Origin: Macrostomum lignano
Taxonomy: Eukaryota
Direction of reading: 5' to 3'
NCBI GenBank assembly: GCA_002269645.1
Contig: NIVC01002727.1
Location: forward strand, 1-64,000
Length of the DNA stretch: 64,000 bases
Shown: positions 6,292 through 57,019 of the stretch, in pieces
How positions within the stretch are numbered: the stretch's first letter is position 1
Layout of the letters: the number at the start of each line of letters is the position of its first letter
Made by a program: the position numbers and the translations under genes
The notes under the pieces: model-generated
Databases searched by the model: none
The model's input: the letters and a program-made list of their open reading frames with translations, nothing else
Told to the model about the DNA's origin: nothing

Positions 6292-7579
6292 GCCCACATC
6301 GTCACAATTCCTAAGAAGCCGGGCACCACAAGGCTTGAGGAGCATTGAGGTATCTGCCTTCAGTCCTGCGCTGCGATGCTGCTATCGCGGTTGCAGCCCG
6401 TGCTGGATCCGTACCTGCGTCCTGAGCAGAACGACTTCCGGCCCCATCGCGGCACATTGACGCAGATCCTGGCTCTTTGCCGAGTCATCTAGGAGGCGCG
6501 GACACGCCAGTCGATCCTGATTGTAATCTTCATAGATTTCAAGAAGGCATTCGACTCGGTCATCAGCTCTGTGCTCCCAAAGGTGCTCCGTGCGTACAAC
6601 GCGTGCCAGAGCATCTGATTTCCGCAATCATGGTGATGTACCGCCTATCGGACTTCTTTGAGACATCCTCCGGGGTGCTTCAAGGAGATACGCTTGCGCC
6701 GTTTCTGTTCGTTCTGGTGCTTGACTGGGTGCTGAAGACCGCTATTCCTACCTACGACCACGGCTTTCTGTTGCGGCAGCGCGTGGGTCGACGTAAACCG
6801 GAGAGACGGCTCAGCGTGCTTGGCTACGCCAACGATCTCGCACTGTCGTCTTCAACTGTCGAGGCTGCCCAGCGACAGCTGGAAAAGCTAGTTGCTGTTG
6901 CGGCGAGTGTCGGGCTAGTTGCCAACACGCAGAAAATCGTCGTGCTCTGCGTGCCGGACGACATCGAGGCTGCGATTTTGTGCCGAGGCGCTGATAGAGA
7001 GACAGCAGAGCTTCCGCGTTGTCAGCAGTTCGTCTACCTCGGCGGTCTGGTTCCCGGTGTCCGCGAGGATTTGCGGTGTCGCCGCGGGCTTGCCTGGGCT
7101 CCTTTCGTTCTGTGAGGGCAGTCCTGCAGTCTGAGGCCTTACATGACCGCCAGAGGGCGGCGTTGTTCCAGGCAGTGATCGAGACCGTCCTGCTGTACGA
7201 CGCCGAGACCTGGACGCTGACGGAGCCACTCTAGCAACAAGTTGACGCGGCGCATGCTGGCCTGCTGCGCGCCGCCTTCAAGATCGGCTACGAGCAAGTG
7301 ACCAACGCGGCTTTGTATCGCCGCGCCGGCCTCGTCCGTCCAAGCGATGTGTTCCGCCGTCGGCGACTCCAGCTGGCAGGCCACATCATCCGCGCCGAGT
7401 AGTACTGCCCACAACCGGTGCAGAAGGTGCTGCTGCTAACGCTGCAGACACCCTACTGGAAGGGGCAGGCCCGCACTCGCCGTTTCGTCGACTGCCTGCT
7501 GGCTGCAGACGCCGGCGCCCCGGATATGGCCGGCGGCGTGGCGTTCATTCGCGACCTGACCTTGAGGCGCGCCTTGTGA
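6292..7579 (+). pseudogene. 5'-truncated, decayed non-LTR retrotransposon reverse transcriptase (RTE-like LINE)
   Basis: Translates across stops and frameshifts as HIVTIPKK...LDPYLRPEQNDFRPHRG...IFIDFKKAFDSV...GVLQGDTLAPFLFVLVLDWVL...LGYANDLAL (YADD site reads YAND)...FVYLG...FQAVIETVLLYDAETWTLT. Confidence 0.9.
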
Positions 7580-8523: not shown

Positions 8524-9037
8524 TTATTAGTGTCTGACTTACAGTGTAGTGTCTCTTATTAGTGTCTGACTTACAGTGTAGTGTCTCTTATTAGTGTCTG
8601 ACTTACAGTGTAGTGTCTCTTATTCTGACTTAGAGTGTCGTGTCTCTTACTAGTGTCTGACTTACAGTGTAGGGTCTCTTATTAGTGTCTGACTTACAGT
8701 GTAGTGTCTCTTATTAGTGTCTGACTTACAGTGTAGTGTCTCTTATTAGTGTCTGACTTACAGTGTAGTGTCTCTTATTAGTGTCTGACTTACAGTGTAG
8801 TGTCTCTTATTAGTGTCTGACTTACAGTGTAGTGTCTCTTATTAGTGTCTGACTTACAGTGTAGTGTCTCTTATTAGTGTCTGACTTACAGTGTAGTGTC
8901 TCTTATTAGTGTCTGACTTACAGTGTAGTGTCTCTTATTAGTGTCTGACTTACAGTGTAGTGTCTCTTATTAGTGTCTGACTTACAGTGTAGTGTCTCTT
9001 ATTAGTGTCTGACTTACAGTGTAGTGTCTCTGATTAG
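8524..9037. repeat. 32-bp minisatellite, about 16 copies
   Basis: Unit ATTAGTGTCTGACTTACAGTGTAGTGTCTCTT, near-perfect copies. Confidence 0.95.
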
Positions 9038-9830
9038 TTTGGATTTCCTATTCGATTTTTTTATACGAGCTAAATGATAGTGTATATGGGTAATGAAATT
9101 ATGCAAATGTCGTTCGAGTGCCATGCAGTGCCGTACTCAGCGCTGACTGATTAATACCCACGAAAAAGCGCAGCCAGCAGATCAATAACAGCACTCGTTG
9201 ACCTCATCATGTTTTAGTGCTTTAGCCTGGCTTGTAAAATCTGTTTACTTGCTCACAAGTAGCAACAGCTGGACTTCTTGAGCACCTGTTCACTTCCTTA
9301 TTTCTACAGTAGACACACAATGACAATAGGCTTTAAGGCTGGACGTTTAATAACAGCGCTGAAGAAAACTTGCCTAGTTAACAAATATTAATTAGGGGTT
9401 TTGTTTGTTCATATTTTACTATTGAAACTGGTCATACGATCGTACTTGGTGTACTTGATAAAATCTCAAACAGGAAGCATCTCTTACGGAATCGCTGGCA
9501 CCGAATAGTTTTGTCCTATAATAAATTCGGATTTCACCAATTCGCGGAATCAACGAGCCGTGATGGATCGCTTTGTACCAATAAATCCGGCAATTTCCAG
9601 TGAGTTGCCGGATCAGCAGTCATCGGTATCGGGATCAGTTGCTGAGGAGCGGGCCTCCTGTACCCTCTACTCAGATCTTATCCTATCGCATTGCATTTCT
9701 CGCAACTTAATTTTCACTATTCCTATGGAGCCCGCCCTGATCCGCAAACCGGTTCCCCAATGTCTATCCGCAAATCTCTGTTTAGCATTTGGTCACTTGC
9801 GCCAACAAGTCCAACTGTTTACTCAGTGGC

Positions 9831-11033: not shown

Positions 11034-12930
11034 CTTGACTTGGTTACTTATTGTCTTTGTCGGTGTGGTGCTCTAGCTGAATCATATATTGAGAACGACG
11101 TCTCTCTTCTCGGAGGGATATTCGGTTCGGCCCATAGACATGCAGCGAAGGCTGAAGGATGCGCCAAATATTTAGACAGAGAATTTTTCTGAACAGGTGC
11201 ATGCACAGCTACTTTGCTGGGTCGAAAAGCGGATATGATCCTAATTATGATTGATTGATGGCCCATAGTTTGCACCGGAAGAATTTTATTTATTCTACCC
11301 TCTGTAGACTGTTGGCAGGACTCGATGAACGCTCCCGACTTCACGTCATGCCCCTCTGACTGCCGGATCATGCAAAGCAAACTCAATCGGACGCGCTTCA
11401 AGGAGCTCTACCATTTCACTCATACAGTAAAAGACCGGATGTCGGCATCGTCTTTGATGTCTTAATCTCCTACGAGGACTCCCGACCATGCTTGGTAGGT
11501 GCAGCCAGCTTTGTCAGTAGGAATCACATCTTGCAGCTCCTCGGCAGGGTTGAAAGAGTTTTGAATTAGAATTTTCAAGTCCTCTCAACTACTCGAAACT
11601 TTGGCTTTCTGAACCTTTTCGATTCAGTGAGCCTTGTGAAATTGAGTCTGGACCTCGATGCCAATCTCCATGCTCTGAGTAATGTCAAAGTACGAGTAGC
11701 CACCCTGTTGTAGATGCTAATAGATGTAGAATTCCCCTTAAGCCTTGGAATCCCAGAATTCCCTCTTAAGCTTGTGAAGCTTAAAAACATCTATTGGTTT
11801 CTTTACTTTATACAGCGGATTTAAAGTGTTTGAGACTGTGCTCAAAAACACTAACGGAGTTTGAAGGAAAGATGCGTGAGTTTTATTGATGCCGTGCAGT
11901 GTCTACGACTATACAAGTCTTAAGAACTACAGATGGGTTTTATAGACAAGTACTATAGAAATGCACTTCACAGGCACGATACTTCACAAACATGATACTT
12001 AACAAACACAATACTCACAGACACGATATTCACTTCACAGGCACCACAAACTTCACAAGCGGGATACTTCACAAACGCGATACTTCACAGGCGGGACACT
12101 TCACAAGCAATCATGTGAGCTCAGGCATAAAAAAAGCTCTGTATCAATTGGGCTTATTTGGAATTGGAAATCCGAAAGGCTGACAATCAGCCGTGCCCGC
12201 GCACTTTAAAATCAATAAAATACATGCTTTCTAGTAAGCAGTGCTTTTATTCTTACGTTACTCAACTCAAGTCACCCGCTGCCTGTCAGCCAGCCAGCCA
12301 GTCAAGAGGTCTTTCTGGAGCAGTACTGGTGCTTTCGCAGGGGACGCAATCTTCTAAGACTGCATGTGAAGAAAGGCTGTGTACACTAGTGTGTTTAGTT
12401 CAGTCTTATGGCACCGATGCTAGACACTGCATGGCATCATTCCTGAAATTTTGAATCACCCACGTTGCGGCAAAGATAACGCTGTGCATAGTGATGCGAG
12501 GCAGTGCCTTTCCGTGACAAAGTGATTTGCAGTTTTGGTAGCGAGTTTCTATTAGGCTTAATAGTGCATTTAATTATAATAACCTAATCCGCTGCACAGT
12601 GCCAGTGACCTGAAAAGTTTCTGCCGATACTCAGGGATTGCTACCACAGTTTGTGCAGTTTAGCAGAGCTAAAGTAATCAAAGTGCTCAAAGAAACCGCA
12701 AAAATCCAATTCGCTTATATATAAGATTGCTCAACTCAATTTCCATAATGGGTCATGCGTAGCCTTCTCCGAACTTTGCTGTGTGCTCGGTGCATCAAAT
12801 CAGTCAAAAAACAATCGCAGGATGTGCGGAAGCAGCAATAAAGAGACCCTCTTCGAACACCAGCCAAGGACCCCTAGAAGTCACCGTTAATTCTAGCGGT
12901 CCTTGACACCAGAGTTACAAGTAGGCGAAA

Positions 12931-14733
12931 GGGGATGTCAACTTAAGCACCAGAATGGAGCCCGAAGTTCAGCTCCGGACCAAACCGACTGCAATCGATA
13001 ACTTGTCGGCCCAGACGACTAGAATCGCCGAGACATCCCATCCGGCTCCCTTCCTTGGGGTCCCAGGGGATAAAGGGGATAAAATGGGGATCTCATGTCA
13101 ACTTAAGGCTCTGGAATGGAGCCCGAAGTTCAGCTCCGGACCAAACCGACTGCAATCGATAACTTGTCGGCCCAGACGACTAGAATCGCCGAGACATCCC
13201 ATCCGGCTCCCTTCCTTGGGGTCCCAGGGGATAAAGGGGATAAAATGGGGATCTCATGTCAACTTAAGGCTCTGGAATGGAGCCCGAAGTTCAGCTCCGG
13301 ACCAAACCGACTGCAATCGATAACTTGTCGGCCCAGACGACTAGAATCGCCGAGACATCCCATCCGGCTCCCTTCCTTGGGGTCCCAGGGGATAAAGGGG
13401 ATAAAATGGGGATCTCATGTCAACTTAAGGCTCTGGAATGGAGCCCGAAGTTCAGCTCCGGACCAAACCGACTGCAATCGATAACTTGTCGGCCCAGACG
13501 ACTAGAATCGCCGAGACATCCCATCCGGCTCCCTTCCTTGGGGTCCCAGGGGATAAAGGGGATAAAATGGGGATCTCGTGTCAACTTAAGGCTCTGGAAT
13601 GGTGCCCGAAGTTCAGCTCCGGACCAAACCGACTGCAATCGATAACTTGTCGGCCCAGACGACTAGAATCGCCGAGACATCCCATCCGGCTCCCTTCCTT
13701 GGGGTCCCAGGGGATAAAGGGGATAAAATGGGGATCTCATGTCAACTTAAGGCTCTGGAATGGAGCCCGAAGTTCAGCTCCGGACCAAACCGATTGCAAT
13801 CGATAACTTGTCGGCCCAGACGAGTAGAATCGCCGAGACATCCCATCCGGCTCCCTTCCTTGGGGTCCCAGGGGATAAAGGGGATAAAATGGGGATCTCA
13901 TGTCAACTTAAGGCTCTGGAATGGAGCCCGAAGTTCAGCTCCGGACCAAACCGATTGCAATCGATAACTTGTCGGCCCAGACGACTAGAATCGCCGAGAC
14001 ATCCCATCCGGCTCCCTTCCTTGGGGTCCCAGGGGATAAAGGGGATAAAATGGGGATCTCGTGTCAACTTAAGGCTCTGGAATGGAGCCCGAAGTTCAGC
14101 TCCGGACCAAACCGACTGCAATCGATAACTTGTCGGCCCAGACGACTAGAATCGCCGAGACATCCCATCCGGCTCCCTTCCTTGGGGTCCCAGGGGATAA
14201 AGGGGATAAAATGGGGATCTCATGTCAACTTAAGGCTCTGGAATGGAGCCCGAAGTTCAGCTCCGGACCAAACCGATTGCAATCGATAACTTGTCGGCCC
14301 AGACGACTAGAATCGCCGAGACATCCCATCCGGCTCCCTTCCTTGGGGTCCCAGGGGATAAAGGGGATAAAATGGGGATCTCATGTCAACTTAAGGCTCT
14401 GGAATGGAGCCCGAAGTTCAGCTCCGGACCAAACCGACTGCAATCGATAACTTGTCGGCCCAGACGACTAGAATCGCCGAGACATCCCATCCGGCTCCCT
14501 TCCTTGGGGTCCCAGGGGATAAAGGGGATAAAATGGGGATCTCATGTCAACTTAAGGCTCTGGAATGGAGCCCGAAGTTCAGCTCCGGACCAAACCGATT
14601 GCAATCGATAACTTGTCGGCCCAGACGACTAGAATCGCCGAGACATCCCATCCGGTTTCAAGTGACGAAGCTCTATTCTATTCGAATATCGCATTAGCGG
14701 GTGTATTTTATTTTAGCTATTATATATTGTTTG
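12931..14733 (+). repeat. Left inverted arm: 24-bp tip, 10 full plus 1 partial 161-bp units, ~78-bp unique inner segment
   Basis: Unit starts recur every 161 bp (12955, 13116 ... 14565). The unique segment TTTCAAGTGACGAAGCTC...AGCTATTATA spans 14656-14733. Confidence 0.95.
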
Positions 14734-14969
14734 CATTGTAATATTTCCGTCGTTTAATTTTTCCGGATTTTTGAGAATGTTTTCGCGGTTTTGATTTGAC
14801 CACTTTAGGCGAGAGATTTTTGATACTGTGCGTCAAGTATTTGTAGCATTAGTTTAAGTGATATATTTTAAGTGATATATTAATGAAGTTAAGGTTTTGG
14901 TCAGTTTTTCTTACTTAGTTTTATGACAGGTGCAGATTTGTTGCAGATTGCGTTTTATACTTGCTAGTA

Positions 14970-17906
14970 ATGTCCGATTTTACTTGCTCTCAATGTGGTC
15001 ATCAATTCAGCAAAGCAGCCAATTTGAACCGACATCTCGAAACGACTAGATGTGGTCGCTGCTCATCTGAATCGTCTGGAGCCTTCGCGCCTCCGAGAAA
15101 CGCACGAGAGGCGCTTCAGTTTCTTGCGGTCGGTGGTAAGTATGTGAAAGTTTTTTTGAACCCAAACCTTTTTCCACGAACCGCAAATGAGAAGGAGTTC
15201 AAACGTATTTGCGGTCTTAGCTATAGTGATTTCGATAGCTTCTCAGAAATGTTACCAGAAGTATCTCGCCTTCGTATTTTGACAAAGCCATCTCGAATAT
15301 TTTTGTACCTGAAGAAGCTTCGCCAAGGTTGCAGCTTTCAATCATTAGCTTTCGATTTCAACATTTCTGCCCAAAGAGCATGCGACATTTTTTGGGAGAT
15401 TGCCAAGGAGCAGTACCTACGGGATCCATATCAACCGAGGTCGATAGCGTCGACTCCGATTCAGACTCTGCTTGAGGAAAATGTAGTACGCGATCAATTT
15501 ATTCTCGGTGTATTTCACACACTACTCAAAGGCAAGAAGCTTGTTCTTCTAGTGGGTGATCATACTTACTTTTATCTCCCTAAGAGCAGCTCACACCACA
15601 CGCAAATTCGAACTTACTTTTCCGGCAAGAAAATGAATGTGAACAAAAAAATGGCGGTTGTCAACAGTAGAGGAAAAATTATCTACACCGCTCCCCTTAC
15701 CGCCGCTATCTCGCCAACAATGGGCGATGGGAATTTGACTGCAATGCAAGTTGACATGGAGGCTGAAGGACTAATAGAGCCCACTTTGTTGCGCATTCTG
15801 TGCTCTGTACAGAAAGATTATCACGTTATTGGCATTTTCGACAAAGGTTACAGCCACCAACTTTGTTCACCAACTTCGGTTAACTTCCGCGACTTTATAG
15901 AGACTAATAGTAAAGGCTGCACGACGCTTCTATTTCCGACCAGTCCAGGTGACCGAGTTCTAAACGAGCAGTTTGAATTTGTAAATAATGAGGCTCCTGT
16001 TGGTGACCGATCAATACCAGGAAAGCTTACATCAATCGAAGCAAATACAAGTCGCTGCGCTACGCTTTTCCGTTATCTCGTAGAATGTAGCTTTGCTGCA
16101 ATCAAGCAGGACAAATGCATAAATGAGCGACAGGAGCCGTACCAATGGCTACATGCCCCAGAGTTTACCGAACGCAGCCGGCTCGATGTTGTTATTGAAA
16201 ACTCCATGGCAAAATTCAACCGTTCGCATCCAGGATTTCAAGCTACAAGGAGTCTGCCGCCGTCATGGTCAGATTGCTCCATGTTCGAATACGGACGGAA
16301 CTTTGCTAAACGTCTTTTCATTGCGAATGAGCTAGACGAAATTGAGCAACTTGAGTACAATTGCGATTTGACTCGAATACCAACGAGTTCTACCCGAAAA
16401 TGGACAGCAGTGGATCCCCTGGACCCTGAAAGTTCAGGGTTCCCCAGCGTTGACGAAAGAAATCTGGAAGAGCTTAGCATCGGCCCATACCACGTTCTTC
16501 AGTCAAAACGCTACATCGAAAACGTCAGAGTTCATGAGGTGCTCAGTAGCTACGCTGGAGACTCGTGGCGCGATTTCGAATTGTTGATTTCTGAACTGCC
16601 AAGCCATTTAAAATGCTGGAAGTTTCATCAGCGAGCGCCACCAAAGGGGTGGAGCAGTAAGTTTGGAGAATGGAGGCCATCTTGGATATATTTAGCCGTT
16701 CTTCATTCCCGTCATCGGTCAAAAACTTACCGAGTTGTCCTTCGTATTTGCGAAACTGCAAGTGGTAACCGATTCGGATTTCGTGACTCGGGGCTGCTGC
16801 GTCTGCAAGGCTACTTTTCATCCTCAAAGGCCGGAAGCAGGACAGCAGGGTGTGACAGTCATGTTATGGCTGTGGTTAGAATGCTAGGCTGTTATGCATA
16901 TCACCCCGAAAGCTACAACATGTGCGGCAGCAGCTTCCGATTTATTGACAGTGCTTTGCCAAAAGCACTGATTGCCAATCTTTACAATGATCAATCTGGT
17001 GGTCATCCAGCTCCAAATGCACCTCGCAGAGACAGTGCTGAATCGCAGCAAGATGAACAGAGGCACAGTTCAAATGCTACTGGTTCATTGAATTCGCCGA
17101 AGAAGTTATTTGGGTTGCCAAATAATGGCCTGCAGTGCTACGCAAATGCAGCAGTGCAATTGTTTCTCTGCCTGCATTCTAATGGATGCATTTTAAAAGA
17201 GACTAGCAACGACCAAGTCCATCGAGAGCTGCTTCGTCTTCTGACGGAGATGCAACAGCGGTCTGCAACAGTCACTCCACTGTTAACGGCAGTTCGGTTG
17301 CAACATCCAGATTCATTTCAAACAAATCAGCACCATTGCGTCAACGAATTTGTTCAAACGCTTCTAATACATCTGGAATTTCTGTCATCAGATGCTTTCA
17401 CAGAATTTTCACTCATTCAAACTTGTCGGGATTGCCAGCGCACAAGTGCTGAAGTTCCTGTTGGCACAATCGATAACAGAGTGATTTGCATTCCTCTCTG
17501 TCAATTTGAGCGCTCAATTGTCAGTTTAGACAAAATCTTCTGCGCTTTTGTCGCTCCTCAGGTAGTGAAATGTTCGGACGCCAATTGCCTGGGCGATTGT
17601 AATCAAGAGATCGTAGTAACACCTGGAAAGTTTACCCTGATATATCTTGATCGTGCTAGTATGGATGGCCACCTTAAGCTTCAAACTCCTGTAAGCTTTT
17701 CTTCAAGGTCAGGGGGTGTTTCTACACTTGGTAAGCCAGTGGCCACAATATCACACCATGGAAACCGACTGAAATCGGGACATTTCACAGCAAGCGTACT
17801 GAGCTGTGTGTGGACGAGAATTGACGACATGAAAGTTACGTCAGACTATAACCCGTTCGTACGTGAGCCTGAGTGCATCGTGCTCGTTGCACTTTTAAAC
17901 TCGTAA
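14970..17906 (+). CDS. Transposase-deubiquitinase fusion: C2H2 finger, HTH, DDE (DDE_Tnp_4-like), degenerate SWIM, USP/peptidase C19 domain; about 978 aa, intronless
   Basis: C2H2 finger CSQCGHQFSKAANLNRHLE. HTH-like FKRICGLS...LYLKKLRQGCSFQSLAFDFNIS. DDE motifs VGDHTY, FDKGY and RYLVECSF (preceded by EANTSR). SWIM-like SRH...KAGSRTAGCDSHVMAV. USP Cys box GLPNNGLQCYANAAVQ, QHCVNEF, His box ISHHGNRLKSGHFTA and WTRIDDMKV. First ATG is at 14970; the ORF track starts at TTG 14961. Confidence 0.88.
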   Translation: MSDFTCSQCGHQFSKAANLNRHLETTRCGRCSSESSGAFAPPRNAREALQFLAVGGKYVKVFLNPNLFPRTANEKEFKRICGLSYSDFDSFSEMLPEVSRLRILTKPSRIFLYLKKLRQGCSFQSLAFDFNISAQRACDIFWEIAKEQYLRDPYQPRSIASTPIQTLLEENVVRDQFILGVFHTLLKGKKLVLLVGDHTYFYLPKSSSHHTQIRTYFSGKKMNVNKKMAVVNSRGKIIYTAPLTAAISPTMGDGNLTAMQVDMEAEGLIEPTLLRILCSVQKDYHVIGIFDKGYSHQLCSPTSVNFRDFIETNSKGCTTLLFPTSPGDRVLNEQFEFVNNEAPVGDRSIPGKLTSIEANTSRCATLFRYLVECSFAAIKQDKCINERQEPYQWLHAPEFTERSRLDVVIENSMAKFNRSHPGFQATRSLPPSWSDCSMFEYGRNFAKRLFIANELDEIEQLEYNCDLTRIPTSSTRKWTAVDPLDPESSGFPSVDERNLEELSIGPYHVLQSKRYIENVRVHEVLSSYAGDSWRDFELLISELPSHLKCWKFHQRAPPKGWSSKFGEWRPSWIYLAVLHSRHRSKTYRVVLRICETASGNRFGFRDSGLLRLQGYFSSSKAGSRTAGCDSHVMAVVRMLGCYAYHPESYNMCGSSFRFIDSALPKALIANLYNDQSGGHPAPNAPRRDSAESQQDEQRHSSNATGSLNSPKKLFGLPNNGLQCYANAAVQLFLCLHSNGCILKETSNDQVHRELLRLLTEMQQRSATVTPLLTAVRLQHPDSFQTNQHHCVNEFVQTLLIHLEFLSSDAFTEFSLIQTCRDCQRTSAEVPVGTIDNRVICIPLCQFERSIVSLDKIFCAFVAPQVVKCSDANCLGDCNQEIVVTPGKFTLIYLDRASMDGHLKLQTPVSFSSRSGGVSTLGKPVATISHHGNRLKSGHFTASVLSCVWTRIDDMKVTSDYNPFVREPECIVLVALLNS

Positions 17907-18512
17907 AAGCATTTTTAGCGAAAATACAATTGTTTTAAGCGAGTGTACTGTACGTTTTGTATTGCAGATTTTAAAGGACATGCAGATTAAGAAACAATGT
18001 CATCTCACGCATTCTTTACGTACCATAGGTTACATGTGAAGATAATTCAGACTGACATCAAATAACAAAAGCTTTGAATTAGTTGTTTCAATTTCTTTTA
18101 GACTCACAATTAACTAAAAATTGGAAGTATTTTTTACTGAAGCAAAGAACTTAAACCCAAAAACCGTTTCTTAGGACTGAGAAACTTTTGCAATTATGAT
18201 TTTACTAAGCTTTGCGTGAGAGGCGTTACTTTATTTGCTTAAAAACGTGTGCTGCTTTGCATGACATGCTTTGTTTTTATTACTTTGATAACTTGTACAG
18301 CTTTGCATGATATGCTTTGTATCCATTACGTCATAACTTGTACAGCCTTGCGTGATATTCTTTATTTTACCAATATACATGGTTTCGGTTTATCGTCAAA
18401 AGTTCTGCTTACTAATAACCAAACGAATTTACAAGTTAATTTTTTCAAACTGAGTTTCCAGATCAGCATTTTTAACAGGTTTCGATACGAGCAAATCATT
18501 TTTATTACTTAA

Positions 18513-19671
18513 CAATCAATGTATAATAGCTGAAATAAAATACACCCGCTAATGCGATATTCGAATTGAATAGAGCTTCGTCACTTGAAACCGGATGGGA
18601 TGTCTCGGCGATTCTAGTCGTCTGGGCCGACAACTTATCGATTGCAGTCGGTTTGGTCCGGAGCTGAACTTCGGGCTCCATTCCAGAGCCTTAAGTTGAC
18701 ACGAGATCCCCATTTTATCCCCTTTATCCCCTGGGACCCCAAGGAAGGGAGCCGGATGGGATGTCTCGGCGATTCTAGTCGTCTGGGCCGACAACTTATC
18801 GATTGCAGTCGGTTTGGGCCGGAGCTGAACTTCGGGCTCCATTCCAGAGCCTTAAGTTGACATGAGATCCCCATTTTATCCCCTTTATCCCCTGGGACCC
18901 CAAGGAAGGGAGCCGGATGGGATGTCTCGGCGATTCTAGTCGTCTGGGCCGACAAGTTATCGATTGCAGTCGGTTTGGTCCGGAGCTGAACTTCGGGCTC
19001 CATTCCAGAGCCTTAAGTTGACATGAGATCCCCATTTTATCCCCTTTATCCCCTGGGACCCCAAGGAAGGGAGCCGGATGGGATGTCTCGGCGATTCTAG
19101 TCGTCTGGGCCGACAAGTTATCGATTGCAGTCGGTTTGGTCCGGAGCTGAACTTCGGGCTCCATTCCAGAGCCTTAAGTTGACATGAGATCCCCATTTTA
19201 TCCCCTTTATCCCCTGGGACCCCAAGGAAGGGAGCCGGATGGGATGTCTCGGCGATTCTAGTCGTCTGGGCCGACAAGTTATCGATTGCAGTCGGTTTGG
19301 TCCGGAGCTGAACTTCGGGCTCCATTCCAGAGCCTTAAGTTGACATGAGATCCCCATTTTATCCCCTTTATCCCCTGGGACCCCAAGGAAGGGAGCCGGA
19401 TGGGATGTCTCGGCGATTCTAGTCGTCTGGGCCGACAAGTTATCGATTGCAGTCGGTTTGGTCCGGAGCTGAACTTCGGGCTCCATTCCAGAGCCTTAAG
19501 TTGACATGAGATCCCCATTTTATCCCCTTTATCCCCTGGGACCCCAAGGAAGGGAGCCGGATGGGATGTCTCGGCGATTCTAGTCGTCTGGGCCGACAAG
19601 TTATCGATTGCAGTCGGTTTGGTCCGGAGCTGAACTTCGGGCTCCATTCTGGTGCTTAAGTTGACATCCCC
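18513..19671 (-). repeat. Right inverted arm: ~78-bp unique inner segment, 6 full plus 1 partial 161-bp units, 24-bp tip
   Basis: Reverse complement of the left arm. It is 644 bp (exactly 4 x 161) shorter. Confidence 0.95.
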
Positions 19672-19746
19672 TTTAGATAGCTTAGACATGTGTGCACTGA
19701 CAGGTAGCTCGTTGCAGCCAGCTTCCAGCAGCAGTCACAGGGAAGT

Positions 19747-22763: not shown

Positions 22764-24080
22764 TCAGTCGTACAGCTCCGGCATTGCGGTCGGAGTGGTC
22801 AGCGGAGTCCGCGCCGCACTGCCGCCCGCCACCACGGCCAGGTCCAGGTCGGCCGCCCCATTGCTGACGCTGCTGATCAGCGCGTCGCCGCATCTGCCTC
22901 TGACGTCGCTGCCGCCGTCGCGCAGGTTACCCAGCCGCTGCCGCTTCTCTGCGCGACGGCAAAACTCCGGCAGAGGCAGCCGGCGCCGGAAGCAGTTCTG
23001 AACTTCGCGCTTGAACGAATCCGAGAATACGAAGAAGACAAAAAAGTTTGCCAGTGTGTCCAGCGTTATCAGCGCGTTCAAAACGGAGAAGATGAGCTGA
23101 TTCTTGACGTGGCTGTCGCTGCGGAAGCTTGGAAAGAAGTGCAGCAGGATGAAGTAGACAAAGGTAGGCAGCTCCAGTACGGTGAAGGTGGCCGCCAGGA
23201 CCAGTAGAATTCTGGTCGCCTTGCGCTTCCTGCAGCGCCCTCGGTTCTTCGCGATTGAAGACGTGGCCAACTGGTTCTGCTGGCGCCACGCGGCCCCAAC
23301 CGTCACGGCTGAGGTGGTCGAGAGCGCGTTCGATGAGACGGTGGAGTCTGATCTCCTGACGTAACCGCCAGACGCGGTTGAGGCGTCCGAAGGCTCCCGA
23401 GCGGCGCAGAGGTGCATGGCCAGAGCCACGGAGAGTACCAGCACAGCGGGCACGGGGATTCCGGTTTGCATCACGAAGAAGAACAGAATGAAGCGCTCGC
23501 ACAGCAAGGAGGCTTGCTGCTCCTGCTGAGCAGTCACATTGGCGTCAAGTATGCCAACAGGGACGTTGCAGGATTTCTCTTCGACGTGTCTCAGAACGCT
23601 GATTGCCACGGACAGGCAGAGGATGAGGCCGAAGGCCACCGACTGCCGGCGACGCGTAAGAATTTCCGGGACGTGCAGCGGGAAGAGGATTACGATGAAA
23701 CGGATCCCGGTGAGAAATGTGACCCACCAGTTGCGCAGCAGGAGGCTGGCGTTGGTCACAAGGTACTGCGCGTCAGCGAAAATCTCCAGTGAAGATGTCG
23801 AATTCCCAGCTGATCTGCTGGACCCACCAGCACCTGTGAGACCGAAGATGCTGCTCACATGCAGCACGGTGAGCGCTGCGGACGTGAGCAGCCCAGTAAC
23901 AATCAGCAGCACCATGCCCCGGGCTCCGGCTGTGGCGTCCCTCTTTCTGGCGAAGATCCACAGAGTGAAAACCAGGGACAGCAGCGCCGCCAGCGAGACG
24001 CACAGGCTCAGGATGTAGGAGGGCAGCAGCAATGACCAATAGAGCTGCTCATCCTCAGTCAAGTCGACTGTATCATTCAT
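22764..24080 (-). CDS. Rhodopsin-class (class A) 7TM GPCR, peptide-receptor-like/orphan, intronless, 438 aa
   Basis: Seven hydrophobic segments. N-terminal NDT sequon. IRFIVILFP at the end of TM3 (DRY position). KATRILLVLAATFTVLELP in TM6. ANFFVF...SFKREV in TM7/helix 8. Confidence 0.85.
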   Translation of the reverse strand: MNDTVDLTEDEQLYWSLLLPSYILSLCVSLAALLSLVFTLWIFARKRDATAGARGMVLLIVTGLLTSAALTVLHVSSIFGLTGAGGSSRSAGNSTSSLEIFADAQYLVTNASLLLRNWWVTFLTGIRFIVILFPLHVPEILTRRRQSVAFGLILCLSVAISVLRHVEEKSCNVPVGILDANVTAQQEQQASLLCERFILFFFVMQTGIPVPAVLVLSVALAMHLCAAREPSDASTASGGYVRRSDSTVSSNALSTTSAVTVGAAWRQQNQLATSSIAKNRGRCRKRKATRILLVLAATFTVLELPTFVYFILLHFFPSFRSDSHVKNQLIFSVLNALITLDTLANFFVFFVFSDSFKREVQNCFRRRLPLPEFCRRAEKRQRLGNLRDGGSDVRGRCGDALISSVSNGAADLDLAVVAGGSAARTPLTTPTAMPELYD

Positions 24081-24631
24081 GCTATCCAGGTAAATGATTC
24101 TCTCAGTGTAACTCTTGGCAGTTGGTCACTTAGTCACCGCTGATTTTAGTCTGACGTTTGCTCCGCTCAGGAAAGCTCTTTGCCAATTTTGTCCTCTCTG
24201 GATTTCGCTAGGCAAGAGCGTCATTGGATCACGCGCCCTGGCCAATCAGAAGTGGTTCGCTTGATCAGCCAAGCCAGCCAGCCTGAGAGACGACTGCATA
24301 CGGCCGTCCTTGGGACCGGGGGGGGGGCTCCAGAAAGCCAGCCAGGATTAGAATTTCAATTTTTAATTCGCCCGTCTGGGCACGCACAATTTACTGCAAG
24401 CTCGATGCCCGGCGATGACGGACGAGACACGACCGTTTGGCTGCTACCATTCGTTGATCCGTCAATCGGTAGGAGATCAAAGCGGGTCGCTTTTATCTGC
24501 TTCTGGGTCTCTGAAAGAGTTTGCCGAGATTAAATTGGTTGAGACTTCAAGCTCTCTGTTTGCAATAATCACGTACAAGAATAAAAATTACGGACCGCAT
24601 GTTTCAGGTACATGTTTACAAGCCGTGGCTT

Positions 24632-24928
24632 CCCTCTGATGCATCAGTGAGTCCTGCTGCTCTTTCCTTCCGATGCATCAGAGAGTCCCGCTGCTCTTTC
24701 CTTCCGATGCATCAGAGAGTCCCGCTGCTCTTTCCTTCCGATGCATCAGAGAGTCCCGCTGCTCTTTCCTTCCGATGCATCAGAGAGTCCCGCTGCTCTT
24801 TCCTTCCGATGCATCAGTGAGTCCTGCTGCTCTTTCCTTCCGATGCATCAGAGAGTCCCGCTGCTCTTTCCTTCCGATGCATCAGAGAGTCCCGCTGCTC
24901 TTTCCTTCCGATGCATCAGTGAGTCCCG
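24632..24928. repeat. 34-bp minisatellite, about 8.5 copies
   Basis: Unit GCTCTTTCCTTCCGATGCATCAGAGAGTCCCGCT. Confidence 0.9.
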
Positions 24929-26664
24929 CAGTGACTTCCCTCAATTGCACCACCCGAGACACTTAATTGACTGTCTTTGTGTCTGAGCTGGGAGTTAAGC
25001 GACTTTGCTTGAAGTCTGATGGATATCGACAAGGCATCGGTTTCCTTCTGCCTTGTCCTGTGGTCTGCGGCAAGTGCAAATCCCCTGAAGGCCCTCAGAC
25101 TGACTGCATGGCTGAGTACTGTGTTGCAGCGTTTTAGACTCAAGATTGAATTACCAGACGATGAGTCCGAGAGAATGAAGGAATGTAACTCTTATTCCGC
25201 TCTGCCTCTGAGGCGGAGTCTGTGAACAAGTAATGACTAATTAATTAGAGTACAGAGACGCCTAGCACTAAAGCAGACAAGAATTCTCAGTTTAGGAGCT
25301 GAAAAAATGCGTGGAAAGAATCGCTGAGCTAATGGTCCGGCCATATCCGATGTCCAAAGCATCATTTTTAGCTTTGCAAATATTGTCAAAGGTTGCTATA
25401 TTTTGATCAGCTCTTTAACTAAGCGTTTGCCGACAAGGACATCTGTCCTGACTATTCCAGATTCTGGCAAACGGCCCGGACATCGTTAATGACTTTTGCC
25501 GGACCTGAAATTTGATAAAAATAAAACACTGAACCTTGTAATGAAAGATGATTTGAATTTTGAGAATCTAAAATTTAATGCTTGTTGTTTGCTTCCGGTA
25601 TGTCGTCCCCAGCTCCCACCATCCGACTCCCTGGTGCCCCAGCTCCCATCATCGGAATCCCTGGTACCCCAGCTCCCACCATCCGACTCCCTGGTGCCCC
25701 CGGCTCTGATACGAGCTATGAAGTAGAAATCCGTTCCAAGAAACAGCTAGCAAAACAAGTCAGCTGGCCAATAGCAAAATGTTTACAAAATTTGAAGACG
25801 TTGCCACGAGCGTAGTGCCAACAGATTACGTTAATTGGTCGCCAATTACACCGACAAGCAGTCTGGAATTTTCACACCGAGCCAGTCGCAGGACAGTAAA
25901 ACTCAATTACTTTAATTGCTTTAACGAGTCCACGGGGCGATCTGAATTTTTCACAAAATCCGGAAAAGCGCTGCCTATTATGACAAATCAAGCATAGAAG
26001 AAAACACAAAACGTCGAAGCCGGCTTTGAATTGAGCACTCCGGATGGCCCGCTGCACTTCAGTCTGCAATCTGCATGCATCGCAGACTTTCATTAAATTA
26101 ATTGCTCCCGGCACTCCGATTTTCCGGGTTTGCTTTGTTAAAATGCTCGCGGGTAGAGGGGCTGGAGGCCTCAGTCTATCATCGCCAAGCTGAAAGTCGC
26201 GCCTGCTTTGCCTTATCGATCCAGGGACTGCTGCTATTTTGGACGCTGCTTTCGCATTCAATGCTCCTGCAACCCAGCATGCGCTGCTCTATCGGGGCTG
26301 CTCTGCCTCCAACTCATCCGATATGAGTCGAGCAGCTAAAATTAGCAGGTCTGAGTGCCGTTTCCGCCCCACTGCAACAGCACTAGAGAGCCCTTCTCAT
26401 CCCTTCTCATCCCTTCTCATCCCTTCTCATCTGATCGCTTAGCCGCTGTTGACCTGTTTTTTTGATCTTCACTCGCTGGCATGTTTACAGTCCAAGTATT
26501 TCGCTACTTAGCTGACCAAAGCTGATATGCTATCTCTATACCTCTCTCCTCTGTCTGCTTCCTTTTCTTGGGAATGCATAGAATTGCCCTTAGGCCTAAA
26601 GGTTAATGAAACCTGTCTGCATTAGTGGAAGCCGCAGTCCCGTCGATCATCGATGTTCATCGAT

Positions 26665-27437
26665 GCGTCTCTGATCGGCAAATGGCGCCTCTCCGCCTTC
26701 CCGCGGCTTCCCCCGTCTCTGATCGGCAACTGGCGCCTCTCCGCCTTCCCGCGGCTTCCCCCCCCCCGTCTCTGATCGGCAACTGGCGCCTCTCCGCCTT
26801 CCCGCGACTTCCCCCGTCTCTGATCGGCAACTGGCGCCTCTCCGCCTTCCCGCGACTTCCCCCGTCTCTGATCGGCAACTGGCGCCTCTCCGCCTTCCCG
26901 CGACTTCACCCGTCTCTGATCGGCAACTGGCGCCTCTCCGCCTTCCCGCGGCTTCCCCCATCTCTGATCGGCAACTGGCGCCTCTCCGCCTTCCCGCGAC
27001 TTCCCGCGGCTTCCCCCGTCTCTGATCGGCAACTGGCGCCTCTCCGCCTTCCCGCGGCTTCCCCCGTCTCTGATCGGCAACTGGCGCCTCTCCGCCTTCC
27101 CGCGGCTTTCCCCGTCTCTGATCGGCAACTGGCGCCTCTCCGCCTTCCCGCGACTTCCCGCGGCTTCCCCCGTCTCTGATCGGCAACTGGCGCCTCTCCG
27201 CCTTCCCGCGACTTCCCCCGTCTCTGATCGGCAACTGGCGCCTCTCCGCCTTCCCGCGACTTCCCCCGTCTCTGATCGGCAACTGGCGCCTCTCCGCCTT
27301 CCCGCGACTTCCCCCGTCTCTGATCGGCAACTGGCGCCTCTCCGCCTTCCCGCGACTTCACCCGTCTCTGATCGGCAACTGGCGCCTCTCCGCCTTCCCG
27401 CGGCTTCCCCCATCTCTGATCGGCAACTGGCGCCTCT
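26665..27437. repeat. ~48-bp GC-rich minisatellite, about 16 copies
   Basis: Unit CTCTGATCGGCAACTGGCGCCTCTCCGCCTTCCCGCGACTTCCCCCGT, with occasional internal 11-bp duplications. Confidence 0.92.
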
Positions 27438-28004
27438 TCCCCTCTATATACTCTCGCTGGAGCCAAATGCAATCTAAATGTTTCACTAACATGCCGAGTG
27501 GCAAAGCTCTCCATATTTCATACTTGATTTGGCTGCTGGCAGAACAGCTCAGGAAGGTCTAAAATATAATTTTTGGATGAATCCACTTTTTTGAGCTATT
27601 AATTATTCGTATTTTTGTACAATGGGACTCGTGTGCGCACCAAAAGTTGGCCTGCTTGGGGATTTTCGTGCGATTTGCAGCCACGAGGGCCAACCCGCAA
27701 TGCACAGAGAGAGTGCACATGCCTGACAGTTAGAATTGCTCCGTTATTCTCCATTTTTATGCACTCTTTCTAAGTCATTCATGGCTGCTCAATATACAGC
27801 CATTGAACTGAGGTTATCAGAGGCCTTCATAAAAATGCCACTCTGACTCAAACAGTCTGCTAAGATTTACGACTTTGGTTATTCACGAGTCTGTGGCCCC
27901 CGGCTGGATAACTGCTGGATAATTGTAAATTACTGGGTAAAATGCATGTGCAGCACAAGGAAAGGCATTAAAATTGGGCATTTGGTACCGTAGGGGAGCT
28001 AAAA

Positions 28005-29112
28005 GAAGTAGCCTAAGGTGCTGATAGAGTAGCCAAAGGTACTGAAGGAGTAGCCCAAGGTGCTGAAGGAGTAGCCTATAGTACTGAAGGAGTAGCCTAT
28101 AGTACTGAAGGAGTAGCCTATAGTACTGAAGGAGTAGCCTATAGTACTGAAGGAGTAGCCCAAGGTACTGAAGGAGAAGCCTAAGGTGCTGAAAGAGTAG
28201 CCTATAGTACTGAAGGGGTAGTCCAAGGTGCTGAAGGAGTAGCCGATAGTACTGAAGGGGTAGTCCAAGGTGCTGAAGGAGTAGCCTATAGTACTGAAGG
28301 GGTAGTCCAAGGTGCTGAAGGAGTAGCCTATAGTACTGAAGGGGTAGTCCAAGGTGCTGAAGGAGTATGGAGTAGCCTATGGTAACTGAAGGAGTAGCCT
28401 AAGGTACTTATGGAGTAGCCCAAGGTGCTGAAGGAGTAGCCTATAGTACTGATGGGGTAGTCCAAGGTGCTGAAGGAGTAGCCTATAGTACTGAAGGGGT
28501 AGTCCAAGGTGCTGAAGGAGTAGCCGATAGTACTGAAGGGGTAGTCCAAGGTGCTGAAGGAGTATGGAGTAGCCTATGGTAACTGAAGGAGTAGCCTAAG
28601 GTACTTATGGAGTAGCCTAAGGTGCTGAAGGAGTAGCCTATAGTACTGAAGGAGTAGCCCATAGTACTGAAGGAGTAGCCTAAGGTGCTGAAGGAGTAGC
28701 CGATAGTACTGAAGGGGTAGTCCAAGGTGCTGAAGGAGTATGGAGTAGCCTATGGTAACTGAAGGAGTAGCCTAAGGTACTTATGGAGTAGCCTATGGTA
28801 ACTGAAGGAGTAGCCTAAGGTACTTATGGAGTAGCCTATGGTAACTGAAGGAGTAGCCTAAGGTACTTATGGAGTAGCCTAAGGTACTTATGGAGTAGCC
28901 TAAGGTACTTATGGAGTAGCCTAAGGTACTTATGGAGTAGCCTAAGGTACTTATGGAGTAGCCTAAGGTACTTATGGAGTAGCCTATGGTAACTGAAGGA
29001 GTAGCCTAAGGTACTTATGGTGTAGCCTATGGTAACTGAATGAGTAGCCTAAGGTACTTATGGAGTAGCCTATGGTAACTGAATGAGTAGCCTAAGGTAC
29101 TTATGGAGTAGC
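28005..29112. repeat. 21-bp minisatellite with several sub-variants
   Basis: Units such as CTGAAGGAGTAGCCTATAGTA, CTGAAGGGGTAGTCCAAGGTG and CTTATGGAGTAGCCTAAGGTA. Confidence 0.92.
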
Positions 29113-31681
29113 CCTCAAAAAAATCCCAATCGGAATTGCGTGGGCGGCGTCAAGTCCTCATTTTTAGTTCCAGCTTCCCGGATGGCGGATATTAAGGCCG
29201 TCCCAGTCAATATTTGTCTGCAGCCTGGGGGTCGCTCTGTGCCAGACGGAGCCTCCCAGTTTGCGTCGCAGCGAGCGAATCGGGTTGGCAACTGGGGCGG
29301 ATTTAGAACCGATTAAGGACAAACCAAACAGAGTTTAGAACAAAATGTCAGAACCAGAGAGAATAGCACAACCTGATAGGCACTCGTATACGGGTAACTG
29401 AAGGACTAGCCTAATGTAATGCAGTTCCCAAGAGAGTTTCTTGAACTTGTGTCGGCAACAAAGTTTTTTGTCTGCTCCGACGACTGGTGACGAAAATTTC
29501 GTAGAAAATAAACCCGGAAATTGCGTTGGAGAAAACGCAATTCTAAGAAATGATCGAATTAATTGAGCGCCCTCAGTCTGCGGACAAAGATTTTTTGAGT
29601 AAGTCCTTTTATGGAAGTGGCGAAGAAACCAACGGAAACTCGATTGCTCTCCCGGGCAGCGCGGGTCACGCGAGATCAGCGAGCCGCGTGGGATTTCCGG
29701 ATAACAAGATGAGAGCCACTAGGCGAACTCGAACCCTCGGTTCCTCCCGTTCCTGTTGATTTAAAAATACCCTTCTAGCGTGCCAGAACGAACAGTTCGG
29801 GTATTTATCAGGAATCGGGTTTCAGACTCAACTAGTAAGTCATCGTAGTCAGCTGATTCGGCACTCGAACTCGCTTTGTAGGGACCATGAACTAAAGGCA
29901 ACAATGGGAGTCGCCCTTGAGCCTTGGCATCTCAGCAACACCTATTGAGCAATGAGCCCTGACTTAAAGACTCCAAGGGAGCACTGAGACAGGACATTGC
30001 TACTCACATAAGCCGCATGTAGGCAGTAGCTAAAACTACACGATGACTGCATGGACAGTGACCTTGAATTCAGTCAGTTTTGGGTATAGTTTTAGGTATC
30101 AGCAAATAGAGGGAATTGAGGTGAGGCAATTTACTTGTCAGAAATAGCAAAAATGCACCCGTATCGTTTCTGATTGAGACAGCCGTCGAACTCTGTAATT
30201 CCCCAGCAGAGCAACGTGTGTCAGCCAACAGCACAAAAGCAATTTGTTGGCGCACTTGTCACATCAAAGTTTTCTAACAGTAACACTTTCTTAAGTTGCT
30301 AAACTTACGGGTGGAATTGCTGAGATGTCAAGGCTTACGGGGGAATTGCTGAGATGTCAAGGCTGACAAGGGAATTGCTGAGATGTCAAGGCTTACGGAT
30401 GGAGTTGCTGAGATGTCAAGGCTGAGAGGTCAGAAGCTACATGTAGTTTATTCAAAAAATTGTTTTATCCATTGTTGCCTCCCCAACGGGGGCGGTGATT
30501 GCTAGTTTTCTTCTATTTATCATCCTTCTTTTTGTCCGTTACCACCTTCTCTACTTGTCAGTAAGTAGTATTGCAAGAATATTTGCAACGTAGCGAAATT
30601 GAATATTTTTCCTGAACTCGCGGTCAACTCAGGCGAGCAAATCCAATGAATTAGCGGTCCAACCTACCTGCGCCCCTGGGACCGGGGGAGTTGATGATGC
30701 TTCTGCTCGGAGTCTGGCCCCGGGGTGGTGTGTTCTTTAATCAGTTCCTTGGAATTCTGCGGAGCCACCAGTAAAGACCTTTTTTCTTCGTAAATTCATT
30801 TTCTCGCTATTCAGTGCCTGGCTGTCTGGGGGCGAGTGCGAAGCTGAGCTGCCCCGCCCAGCTTCATCATTCTGATGAGCGATTATCCCTTATTTTTCCC
30901 ACTAAGATATTCCCAAAGGACTCGACTCAGTGAGCGGTGTTTAGACCTGCTTTTGCTGAACTTTCACTGGATTCCGGCAGTTAGTCAGTCAGTTGAGTAT
31001 GTCCAATATTCAGAAAGAAAATGCACTTATGCACTTATGTAACATTTTGGATGTGAAGACCAGGAAACTGGGCTTCTATAACAATAAGTTTGAAATCATA
31101 TTGGCATTGGTCAATAACTCTGACTTTTAATGGCCGAATGTTTGAATGGCAGCTGATCTTGCTGCTGCCTCAACAACCCCAAGATTCCAGGAATACCTTC
31201 TAGCCCCAATAAAAAGTGCAGCTTCTCCGCTACGGAGCTCAGTTGCACTTTCTCCCAGATTTGAGCCTCGCGATGAACTGATTTCCATCCTGCAATAATC
31301 TTACTGAATGCGATGGATTAGCATTTTCTGCTTTCGCATTCAGGCGCAGAGAGGCTTGAGTTATTGGGGGCGATCCGGTACGCTACCCGCGGGACAACCC
31401 GACCAGAATCTGACAGAAAATTCCCTGCCTCAACGCTCTTTCTCCCCGTGGTCAGAAAGATTGTCAGTCTCGAGTCCATAATTCGCGCGAAAGTCTTTGA
31501 TTGATACCGGCTTAGAGATAGAAAGTACAGGCGGTAGGTGTGTCGCGGCTGTCTCAGCTTCTGTTTTGGGCATATGATGGCAAAGAATGAGACCAAGTTA
31601 AATGGTAAGTCATGCGGTCCAGTCTGGTGGTGTATCCTTCCTTTCCTTGAAACATTTTTGAGGCAGTTTGAAAAAGTCTTA

Positions 31682-32673
31682 ATGCATGGCAGCAAGTCTT
31701 ACTACATGGCAGCTAGTCTCACTGCATGGCAGCAGGTCGTACTGCATGGCAGCTGGTCTTACTGCATGGCAGCAGGTCTTACTGCATGGCAGCAGGTCTT
31801 ACTGCATGGCAGCAGGTCTTACTGCATGGCAGCTGGTCTTACTGCATGGCAGCAGGTCTTACTGCATGGCAGCTGGTCTCACTGCATGGCAGCAGGTCTT
31901 ACTGCATGGCAGCTGGTCTTACTGCATGGCAGCTGGTCTTACTACATGGCAGCTGGTCTCACTGCATGGCAGCTGGTCTTACTGCATGGCAGCAGGTCTT
32001 ACTGCATGGCAGCAGGTCTTACTGCATGGCAGCAGGTCTTACTGCATGGCAGCAGGTCTTACTGCATGGCAGCTGGTCTCACTGCATGGCAGCAGGTCTT
32101 ACTGCATGGCAGCAGGTCTTACTGCATGGCAGCTGGTCTTACTGCATGGCAGCAGGTCTTACTGCATGGCAGCAGGTCTTACTGCATGGCAGCAGGTCTT
32201 ACTGCATGGCAGCAGCAGGTCTTACTGCATGGCAGCTGGTCTCACTGCATGGCAGCAGGTCTTACTGCATGGCAGCTGGTCTTACTGCATGGCAGCAGGT
32301 CTTACTGCATGGCAGCAGGTCTTACTGCATGGCAGAAGGTCTTACTGCATGGCAGCAGGTCTTACTGCAGTGCAGCAGCAGGTCTTACTGCATGGCAGCT
32401 GGTCTCACTGCATGGCAGCAGGTCTTACTGCATGGCAGCTGGTCTTACTGCATGGCAGCTGGTCTTACTACATAGCAGCAGGTCTTACTGCATGGCAGCT
32501 GGTCTTACTGCATGGCAGCAGGTCTTACTGCATGGCAGCTGGTCTTACTACATGGCAGCTGGTCTTACTGCATGGCAGCAGGTCTTACTACATGGCAGCA
32601 GGTCTTACTGCATGGCAGCAGGTCTTACTACATGGCAGCAGGTCTTACTGCATGGCAGCAGGTCTTACTGCAT
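31682..32673. repeat. 20-bp minisatellite, about 49 copies
   Basis: Unit ACTGCATGGCAGC(A/T)GGTCTT. The overlapping long ORFs are repeat read-through. Confidence 0.95.
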
Positions 32674-50240: not shown

Positions 50241-50341
50241 GCTCACATAGAAGCTTCAGCTCAAGCTCAAAGCAATCAACTCATTTTTAATAACACGTAA
50301 TCTCTGGCTGCTAAGCGGTTATTGTGCTGTAATTACTGGCA

Positions 50342-56632: not shown

Positions 56633-57019
56633 TTTTATTGGCATTTCATGCCGTTCTGAAGTTGCTCATGGTTTCAATTCCAACTGCACTACTTACTCAT
56701 TTCGCATGCTAGTAGTATGTATAGTAGCGAATCTCCTAATATTTATTTGCTGCAAGTGCCTGTCGTAGATTTTTCATATCACCAATTTCACTACTTAAAG
56801 TAGCCAGTTTGTGATTGTATTTTTTATTATTCTATATTTTTTAAACTTAATCTACAAATTTTAATCTTTGTATTGAGCACCTTGCCCCATGAACTCATCA
56901 TTCGGTATACGAGTAAGTTCCGACCGTCCATTTTCCGTCTGTCTTCAAAAATCCTTAAATAAAGCAAATATTTTATTGTTTTTTTTCTATTTCACGTTTT
57001 CGTCATTCTTGAGAATCTT

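Follow-up and report, generated by a model that had tools for sequence, protein, structure and literature searches.

A USP domain fused to a predicted PHIS-type DDE transposase in the flatworm Macrostomum lignano

Does a DNA transposon of Macrostomum lignano carry its own deubiquitinase? The question is raised by a stretch of 64,000 nucleotides (contig NIVC01002727.1 of assembly GCA_002269645.1, positions 1 to 64,000 of the forward strand; hereafter the window), in which one uninterrupted open reading frame (ORF) joins a DDE transposase, in frame, to a C-terminal domain of the ubiquitin-specific protease (USP) family. The ORF lies at 14961-17906 (+), has 981 codons, no internal stop and no need of splicing, and its first ATG, at 14970, is the likely start. 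In order, the protein consists of a zinc finger, a helix-turn-helix (HTH), a DDE core, a post-DDE module, a flexible linker and the USP domain, the transposase part occupying the N-terminal ~650 residues and the USP the last ~270. A sequence-only reading of the window had called the C-terminal part a complete USP (peptidase C19) catalytic domain at 17090-17906 with a retained Cys-His-Asp triad. We followed up this reading by profile searches, structure prediction and comparison with relatives.

The C-terminal USP domain

The domain alone matched the Pfam UCH profile (PF00443) over amino acids (aa) 718-961 and profile positions 2-237 of 254, with an E-value of 1.6e-10 and a score of 41.5 bits (gathering score 23.9). 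When the whole ORF was the query, the score was 37.8 bits against the same cut-off. A phmmer search of the PDB with the domain alone gave a marginal match to USP12 (E 0.09), and the profile of a 15-sequence alignment of USP domains (A1) matched USP2 in the PDB at 4.8e-36. An AlphaFold2 model built on A1 had a mean pLDDT of 90.7 and a pTM of 0.88; it replaced a single-sequence prediction of the domain with a pLDDT of 32. Model residues 1-11 (aa 700-710), the sole part of the linker that was modelled, had a pLDDT below 50. The top 50 Foldseek matches of this model in the PDB were all USP catalytic domains (USP2/8/18/4/46/15/21), with E-values of about 1e-15 to 2e-17 and TM scores of 0.64-0.75, the best being USP2 (E 2e-17, TM 0.72-0.75). 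The predicted structure has the fingers-palm-thumb fold of USPs. The Pfam match, the A1 profile, the model and the Foldseek matches place the domain at 17103-17903 (+), which agrees with the range proposed earlier. Collectively, these results confirm that the C-terminal domain is a genuine and complete USP of peptidase family C19, far beyond chance.

The catalytic residues were then located on the DNA. The Cys box GLPNNGLQCYANAAVQ contains the catalytic Cys726 at 17136-17138, and the oxyanion Asn721 stands five residues upstream of it within GLPNNGLQCYANA. The His box SHHGNRLKSGHF contains His941 at 17781-17783, and Asp955-Asp956 are encoded at 17823-17828. In A1, the catalytic Cys column and the D956 column are at least 90% conserved and H941 (in SGHF) is invariant. 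Alignment of the A1 profile with the PDB sequences put Asp955 onto the catalytic Asn574 of USP2. The finger zinc site is formed by CRDC (C822-x2-C825) and CSDANC (C871-x4-C876), and three of its four cysteine columns are invariant in A1; a four-cysteine zinc ribbon in the fingers is a feature of many, not all, USPs. The transposon-borne USPs in A1 have in common the catalytic Cys and His, the D/N position and the cysteines of the zinc site. Each motif that the sequence-only reading had listed (Cys box, QQDAHEF-like box, CRDC, CSDANC, His box and Asp pair) was found where it had been placed and in frame with the transposase, and the triad that it had proposed (C726, H941 and D955/D956) is retained, together with the oxyanion Asn and the zinc ribbon. 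The position of the QQDAHEF box reads QHHCVNEF.

The transposase and its element

The DDE core lies at 15558-16085 (+) and comprises D200 (GDHTY), D256 (GDGNL), D294 (FDKGY) and R371-x3-E375 (RYLVE). The window protein has no DDE match of its own in Pfam; among 66 homologues, DDE_Tnp_4 was matched by 7 (best 7e-19), DDE_Tnp_1 by 4 and HTH_Tnp_4 by 11. Because these matches occur in relatives and because D200, D256, D294, R371 and E375 are invariant in A3, a transposase alignment of 11 relatives, the N-terminal ~650 residues are, as judged from sequence, a PIF/Harbinger-IS5-like (PHIS) DDE transposase and are placed in the PHIS/IS5-like assemblage. Upstream of the core are an HTH_Tnp_4-type HTH at 15279-15395 (+; aa 107-145; PF13613, 22.7-24 bits, under the cut-off of 27) and a C2HC/C2H2-type zinc finger at 14985-15053 (+; C9, C12, H25 and C31), which Pfam matched as zf-C2H2 over aa 7-28 at 18.6 bits, also under the cut-off. 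This finger also occurs in the relatives P0001, P0003/4, P0051 and P0190. Other relatives differ upstream: a separate ORF with C2H2 fingers precedes the transposase in two contigs (580 aa at 202-1944 of L007 and 454 aa at 1568-2932 of L002), and in P0003/4/5 a C2H2-bearing extension of ~370-440 aa is fused N-terminally to the transposase; the window has one finger only.

Downstream of the core, at 16767-16904 (+; aa 603-648), is a module (NRFGF...GC-x-SHV...LG-Y) that is conserved in relatives and has no Pfam match. In relatives its cysteine motif is C..C..GCCSHV (C..C..CCxH), and in the window it is degenerate (SSSKAGSRTAGCDSHV), with only C631 and H634 left. This motif looked SWIM-like by eye, and the label was dropped since there was no Pfam match. 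A low-complexity linker at 16905-17102 (+; aa 649-714) then joins the transposase to the USP.

The ORF is enclosed by two inverted arms in an element of ~6.7 kb at 12931-19671. The left arm (12931-14743, +) begins with the tip GGGGATGTCAACTTAAG, continues with ~10.7 tandem units of 161 bp and ends in 88 bp of unique inner sequence. The right arm (18503-19671, -) is an inverted copy of the left arm with ~6.7 units of 161 bp and an identical tip. The arms are 1.1-1.8 kb long and 98-99% complementary, and TRF reported a period of 161 with 98% matches on the left arm. The 17-mer tip occurs in the window only at 12931 and 19671, and each 161-bp unit holds a near-copy of the tip motif (ATGTCAACTTAAGG). 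Long ORFs inside the arrays are repeat artefacts, and no Pfam domain was found in the other short ORFs between the arms. Because the transposase-USP ORF lies between near-identical inverted arms with the same unique tip, we interpret the locus as a single-gene DNA transposon.

The flanks read gcgAAA/GGGG...CCCC/TTTaga, where the slashes mark the tips, and contain no direct duplication. AAA stands directly outside the left tip (12928-12930, +) and its counterpart TTT directly outside the right tip (19672-19674, +). The AAA may be a host half-site of the Spy type (AAA/TTT), or the inverted repeat itself may begin with these three bases, since the inverted match starts at 12928; AAA and TTT are reverse complements of each other and could thus belong to the repeat. 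No second copy or empty site of the element was found in the window, in JGI metagenomes searched with the single protein, by an exact search for the 23-nt tip or in the related contigs. The window protein as a single query found no relative locus in JGI metagenomes, and its exact look-up in public assemblies returned no record. In the related contigs L002-L012, no terminal inverted repeats spanning the gene were found; these contigs probably break in the arms.

Database gene models provided a further view of the arms. Two of them, P0018 (UniRef A0A1I8IYQ6, from Macrostomum lignano) and P0011 (a UniParc entry, apparently of the same batch), join peptides of the 161-bp units, 94-100% identical to those of the window, to a shortened and diverged piece of transposase. 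In gapped tblastn alignments the repeat part fell on 12955-14678 and 18568-19655, and the transposase part on 15990-16682 with 43-50% identity. Both models appear to be derivatives with internal deletions and the arms in common, and their repeat peptides independently point to M. lignano or a close relative as the host. That the locus is a transposon is supported by the 98-99% likeness of the arms, by multi-copy, near-identical relatives and by these derivatives. The same three observations, together with the unique tips, argue against a domesticated host gene, in which a former transposase would serve as a DNA-targeted deubiquitinase and no longer be mobile. A long and intact ORF would suit such a gene, and PHIS transposases have been domesticated repeatedly (HARBI1, ALP1), with a link of ALP1 to Polycomb named in the titles of papers; we nevertheless regard domestication as highly unlikely here. 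The element looks structurally intact and is a single-gene, probably autonomous cut-and-paste DNA transposon.

Relatives, constraint and surroundings

Relatives were collected by an exhaustive search of 1.84 billion representatives, which returned 133. The transposase and the USP occur together in at least eight deeply diverged lineages whose mutual identity is only about 20-35%. A transposase with a C-terminal UCH domain was found in P0010 (1048 aa), P0021 (955), P0033 (1119), P0180/P0182 (1340/1380) and P0051 (1639), and P0070 keeps the cysteine (CCxH) module, the linker and the USP. The nearest USP relatives of the window are P0007/P0014, at 34-36% identity. P0007 shares its JGI sample with P0001, a transposase copy that has decayed and is 51% identical to the window. 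In JGI sample 3300040801, the nearest transposase relative (L001, 900-3023; 51%) has a stop at codon 561 and later frameshifts, and L008 is a deletion derivative in which the post-DDE region is joined to an intact USP. The fusion relatives are multi-copy and were recovered from a large number of independent marine metagenomes, with Tara Oceans among the ENA samples; P0033 was present on 19 contigs, and its DNA was identical in the four contigs compared.

The arrangement of the domains is not the same in all relatives. In P0017/P0190, two ENA metagenome proteins, the USP is located between an N-terminal C2H2 finger and the transposase, and this order points to more than one origin, or to a rearrangement, of the association. 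When the transposase core was placed on a neighbour-joining tree, lineages with a USP fell on both sides of the deepest split of the large-transposase clade. The USP tree mirrors the transposase subclades (P0021+P0051+P0070+P0084 with 99% bootstrap; window+P0007+P0014 with 100%). It gives no bootstrap support to a monophyletic group of transposon USPs, and hence none to a single acquisition of the USP, and it groups the P0010 USP with cellular-type USPs.

Selection on the domain was measured in one relative family, outside the window's own lineage. None of the 11 full-length ORFs of the P0010 cluster (93-99.9% identity) has lost the catalytic Cys or His, and at the third position only N and D occur. 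For the one colinear pair, P0010/P0143 (DNA from L011 and L012), the ratio of non-synonymous to synonymous substitution rates (dN/dS, Nei-Gojobori) was 0.11 for the transposase core, 0.21 for the linker and 0.43 for the USP. Of the segments of the protein, the linker evolves fastest in this family. Comparisons with P0142 were discarded for the core and the linker, where an internal indel put the sequences out of register. In the USP, the pair has 19 synonymous differences (182 sites) and 33 non-synonymous ones (712 sites), a synonymous excess with P=0.005. This comparison, of the kind that the sequence-only reading had named as a check, indicates for this family a purifying constraint on the USP that is real, if weaker than that on the DDE core.

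These data bear on a further explanation, that the fusion is an accidental chimera in which a host USP exon was captured by, or came to adjoin, the transposase and is read through in a one-off ORF. DNA transposons do capture host fragments, and there is one copy only in the window. Against this, the same architecture is found at 20-30% identity in many independent samples, the USP lies inside the inverted arms, the USP and transposase phylogenies agree within subclades and the dN/dS is below 1. We consider a chimera largely refuted and give it almost no weight. Judged from the relatives, the fusion is inherited and not accidental.

Elsewhere in the window, a single-exon ORF of 438 aa at 22764-24080 (-) matches rhodopsin-family receptors with seven transmembrane segments (PF00001, 33.5 bits; Srw-type, 26.5 bits), and a reverse-transcriptase fragment at 6477-7115 (+; RVT_1, 37.7 bits) is probably from a decayed retrotransposon lacking long terminal repeats (non-LTR); both accord with an animal host. 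Minisatellites are exceptionally dense, with 56 TRF rows and periods of 16-160 bp, many at 90-98% identity; examples are 8524-9038, 24630-24929, 26666-27437, 28003-29113, 31676-32680, 49671-50242, 57009-57901 and 61238-61912. Most of the long spurious ORFs of the window arise from them.

Predicted function and comparison with known systems

What could a USP do for a transposon? The best overall explanation, and in our judgement a probable one, is that the locus is an intact PHIS transposon with an inherited USP, which is predicted to be an active isopeptidase acting near the transposon ends. The predicted thiol isopeptidase would be carried with the transposase to these ends, where the 161-bp arrays, by analogy with the transposon Galileo, would probably offer many transposase binding sites. 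There it would remove ubiquitin or a ubiquitin-like modifier from nearby proteins. The first candidate target is the transposase itself, which would be protected from proteasomal turnover. The second is the ubiquitin that serves signalling and repair of double-strand breaks where the element excises and integrates, and the third is repressive histone ubiquitin on the element. The sequence-only reading had proposed the first and the third, the latter as removal of H2A ubiquitin by an anti-silencing module; both are speculative.

Several observations weigh against this explanation. The window holds a single copy of the element. The sublineages P0003/4/5/6/12/25/30 have no USP and end ~50 residues past the cysteine module, and for P0003 and P0174 (L009 and L010) no USP was found in any frame over ~800 bp downstream. 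The earlier reading would have been refuted by other copies that lack or disrupt the domain, and it passed this check in part: the fusion, with its catalytic residues, is kept in at least eight diverged relatives, and the USP-less sublineages suggest that it is dispensable for transposition as such. In addition, sequence change is faster in the USP than in the transposase core, and transposon-type USPs score 38-55 bits against Pfam UCH compared to 113-132 for cellular-type USPs in the same search. In A1, the Asp of QQDAHEF is replaced by Cys in the QHHCVNEF of the window; in cellular USPs this box touches the ubiquitin tail, as in the USP7 and USP2 structures. To our knowledge, no transposon-borne protease of the ubiquitin and SUMO systems (Ulp1, OTU or USP) has a demonstrated role, and no transposon-borne deubiquitinase a demonstrated target among those listed above. 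As judged from the relatives, the USP is an accessory that recurs in the transposase family and is inherited with it, yet can be dispensed with.

The degenerate ubiquitin-tail-binding box, the low Pfam scores and the weaker constraint compared to the DDE core would also fit a pseudo-deubiquitinase, in which the USP fold is kept for binding or recruitment, for example docking on ubiquitinated chromatin or repair factors, and catalysis is lost. Pseudo-enzymes commonly lose at least one catalytic residue. In contrast, no lineage examined has lost the Cys, the His, the D/N position, the oxyanion Asn or the zinc site, and all 11 P0010 copies retain them. We therefore consider this explanation unlikely, although it is the main rival of an active isopeptidase.

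The substrate may also be a modifier other than ubiquitin (SUMO, NEDD8 or an ISG15/Ubl-like protein), or the domain may be a self-processing protease that cuts the linker. Some USP-fold enzymes act on ISG15, and USP18 is among the structural matches; the best structural matches, however, are ubiquitin-specific enzymes. The linker contains QSGG (aa 680-683), which resembles the C-terminus of a ubiquitin-like protein. Self-cleavage at this motif was rejected, since no ubiquitin-like fold precedes it and it is not conserved, being absent in the nearest relative, P0007. Together, we consider these alternatives improbable.

A broader proposal, which we put forward tentatively and regard as doubtful, is that ubiquitin removal at the transpososome is mechanistically important in this branch of PHIS transposons and has been selected repeatedly. 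By clearing ubiquitin-dependent break signalling, chromatin marks or the ubiquitin on the transposase at donor and target sites, the USP would then increase transposition or the survival of the element. That fusions recur in different orders, mostly with a C-terminal USP and in P0190 with an internal one, would count as convergent evidence of such selection. If this were true, ubiquitin removal at the transpososome would explain the recurrence of OTU, Ulp1 and USP domains on unrelated transposases. A need for the deubiquitinase in transposase stability or in the handling of DNA breaks, if it were shown, would mean that mobile DNA and ubiquitin signalling meet at a general interface; if the domain were inert, the element would be merely one more annotated transposon family. 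The system offers a clean test case, with a single intact ORF, a confidently modelled USP and relatives in which the USP is present, absent or repositioned. Macrostomum lignano is a transformable model flatworm, and the idea is directly testable in it.

How does the element compare with described transposons? The PHIS pattern is D...D...D...R(3)E with D(11-19)P(18-28)R spacing (PMC4122938). The window has the same residue order, but the 76 residues between D294 and R371 appear, by our count, to be more than this pattern allows. Spy elements are recognised by AAA to the left and TTT to the right of the element without a duplication (Han et al. 2014, PMC4122938). The window element resembles them in its predicted PHIS-type DDE core, putative N-terminal HTH, single ORF, tips starting with GG and AAA/TTT flanks (PMC4122938; cgSpy, PMC11304231). 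The Spy tip consensus is 5'-GGANNNNG; the window tip, GGGGATGT, fits it at positions 1-2 and not at 3 and 8, two of the four specified positions. Spy transposases are described without a zinc finger, whereas the window protein has a C2HC finger, a post-DDE module and a USP. The lengths listed for Spy ORFs are also far shorter, for example 372 aa, compared to 981 codons in the window. A full-text search of the Spy, PHIS-diversification and cgSpy papers found no mention of a ubiquitin or protease domain. Since the tip fits at only two of four positions and the protein is far larger than the described Spy transposases, we describe the insertion as apparently Spy-like, do not file the element as a Spy member and compare it with Spy by description. 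PIF/Harbinger elements have a 3-bp TWA duplication and a second ORF of the Myb/SANT type, and the window element has neither. ISL2EU elements have an AT duplication, a THAP finger and a YqaJ second ORF; the window element has no AT duplication at its tips, no THAP match and no second ORF. Its AAA/TTT flanks contain no direct duplication, which excludes duplications of both the Harbinger (TWA) and the ISL2EU (AT) type. If insertion truly occurs at AAA/TTT without duplication as in Spy, the element may be of practical interest as a gene-transfer vector.

The arms recall those of Galileo, a member of the P superfamily, which reportedly has long tandem-repeat arms with multiple transposase binding sites (PMC3688188). 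The Galileo transposase is unrelated, and it is from this likeness that binding to the 161-bp units is proposed here. With cellular USPs (USP2, USP8, USP21, USP46/12 and USP18) the domain shares the fold, the catalytic residues and the finger zinc site at 16-20% identity. It is compact (~270 aa compared to 320-350 aa), has an altered QQDAHEF box and, in place of cellular targeting domains, has a transposase attached.

The sequence-only reading had implied that such a fusion was new, and this was overstated. A protein of Trichomonas vaginalis, XP_001314237.1, combines transposase_11 (pfam01609) with Peptidase C19 and was mentioned in one sentence in 2010 (Bao, Kapitonov and Jurka 2010, PMC2836005, citing Gladyshev and Arkhipova 2009). 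Like the window protein, it pairs an IS5-type DDE transposase with a USP-family hydrolase, and four members of the present family match pfam01609. It is a protist protein, compared here by its published description, whereas the present element is from an animal, has a zinc finger, a CCxH module and 161-bp arms, and belongs to a widespread marine family. Helitron-like elements of group HLE2 also carry UCH, among other domains, in a stable manner (HELIANO, 2024, PMC11417382). These have a rolling-circle RepHel transposase, not a DDE transposase, and represent an independent association. A JGI metagenome protein of 455 aa (P0131), with weak UvrD_C_2 and Herpes_Helicase matches followed by UCH, is probably the C-terminus of such a Helitron-like RepHel protein with a USP. 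Ulp1 (C48) and OTU domains are well documented on Ginger1, Mutator-like and Helentron transposases, for which a link to ubiquitin-dependent DNA repair has been proposed (PMC2836005). These are likewise C-terminal cysteine proteases directed at ubiquitin or SUMO, but they belong to other protease clans and are carried by other transposase superfamilies.

A full-text literature search found no paper that pairs DDE_Tnp_4 with UCH. As far as the searchable literature shows (Repbase lies outside it), the present transposase-USP family is undescribed. Cysteine proteases of the ubiquitin/SUMO system (Ulp1, OTU and USP) have been captured repeatedly by unrelated DNA transposons. A transposase joined to such a protease is an already known category, of which the present element is a well-preserved new case.

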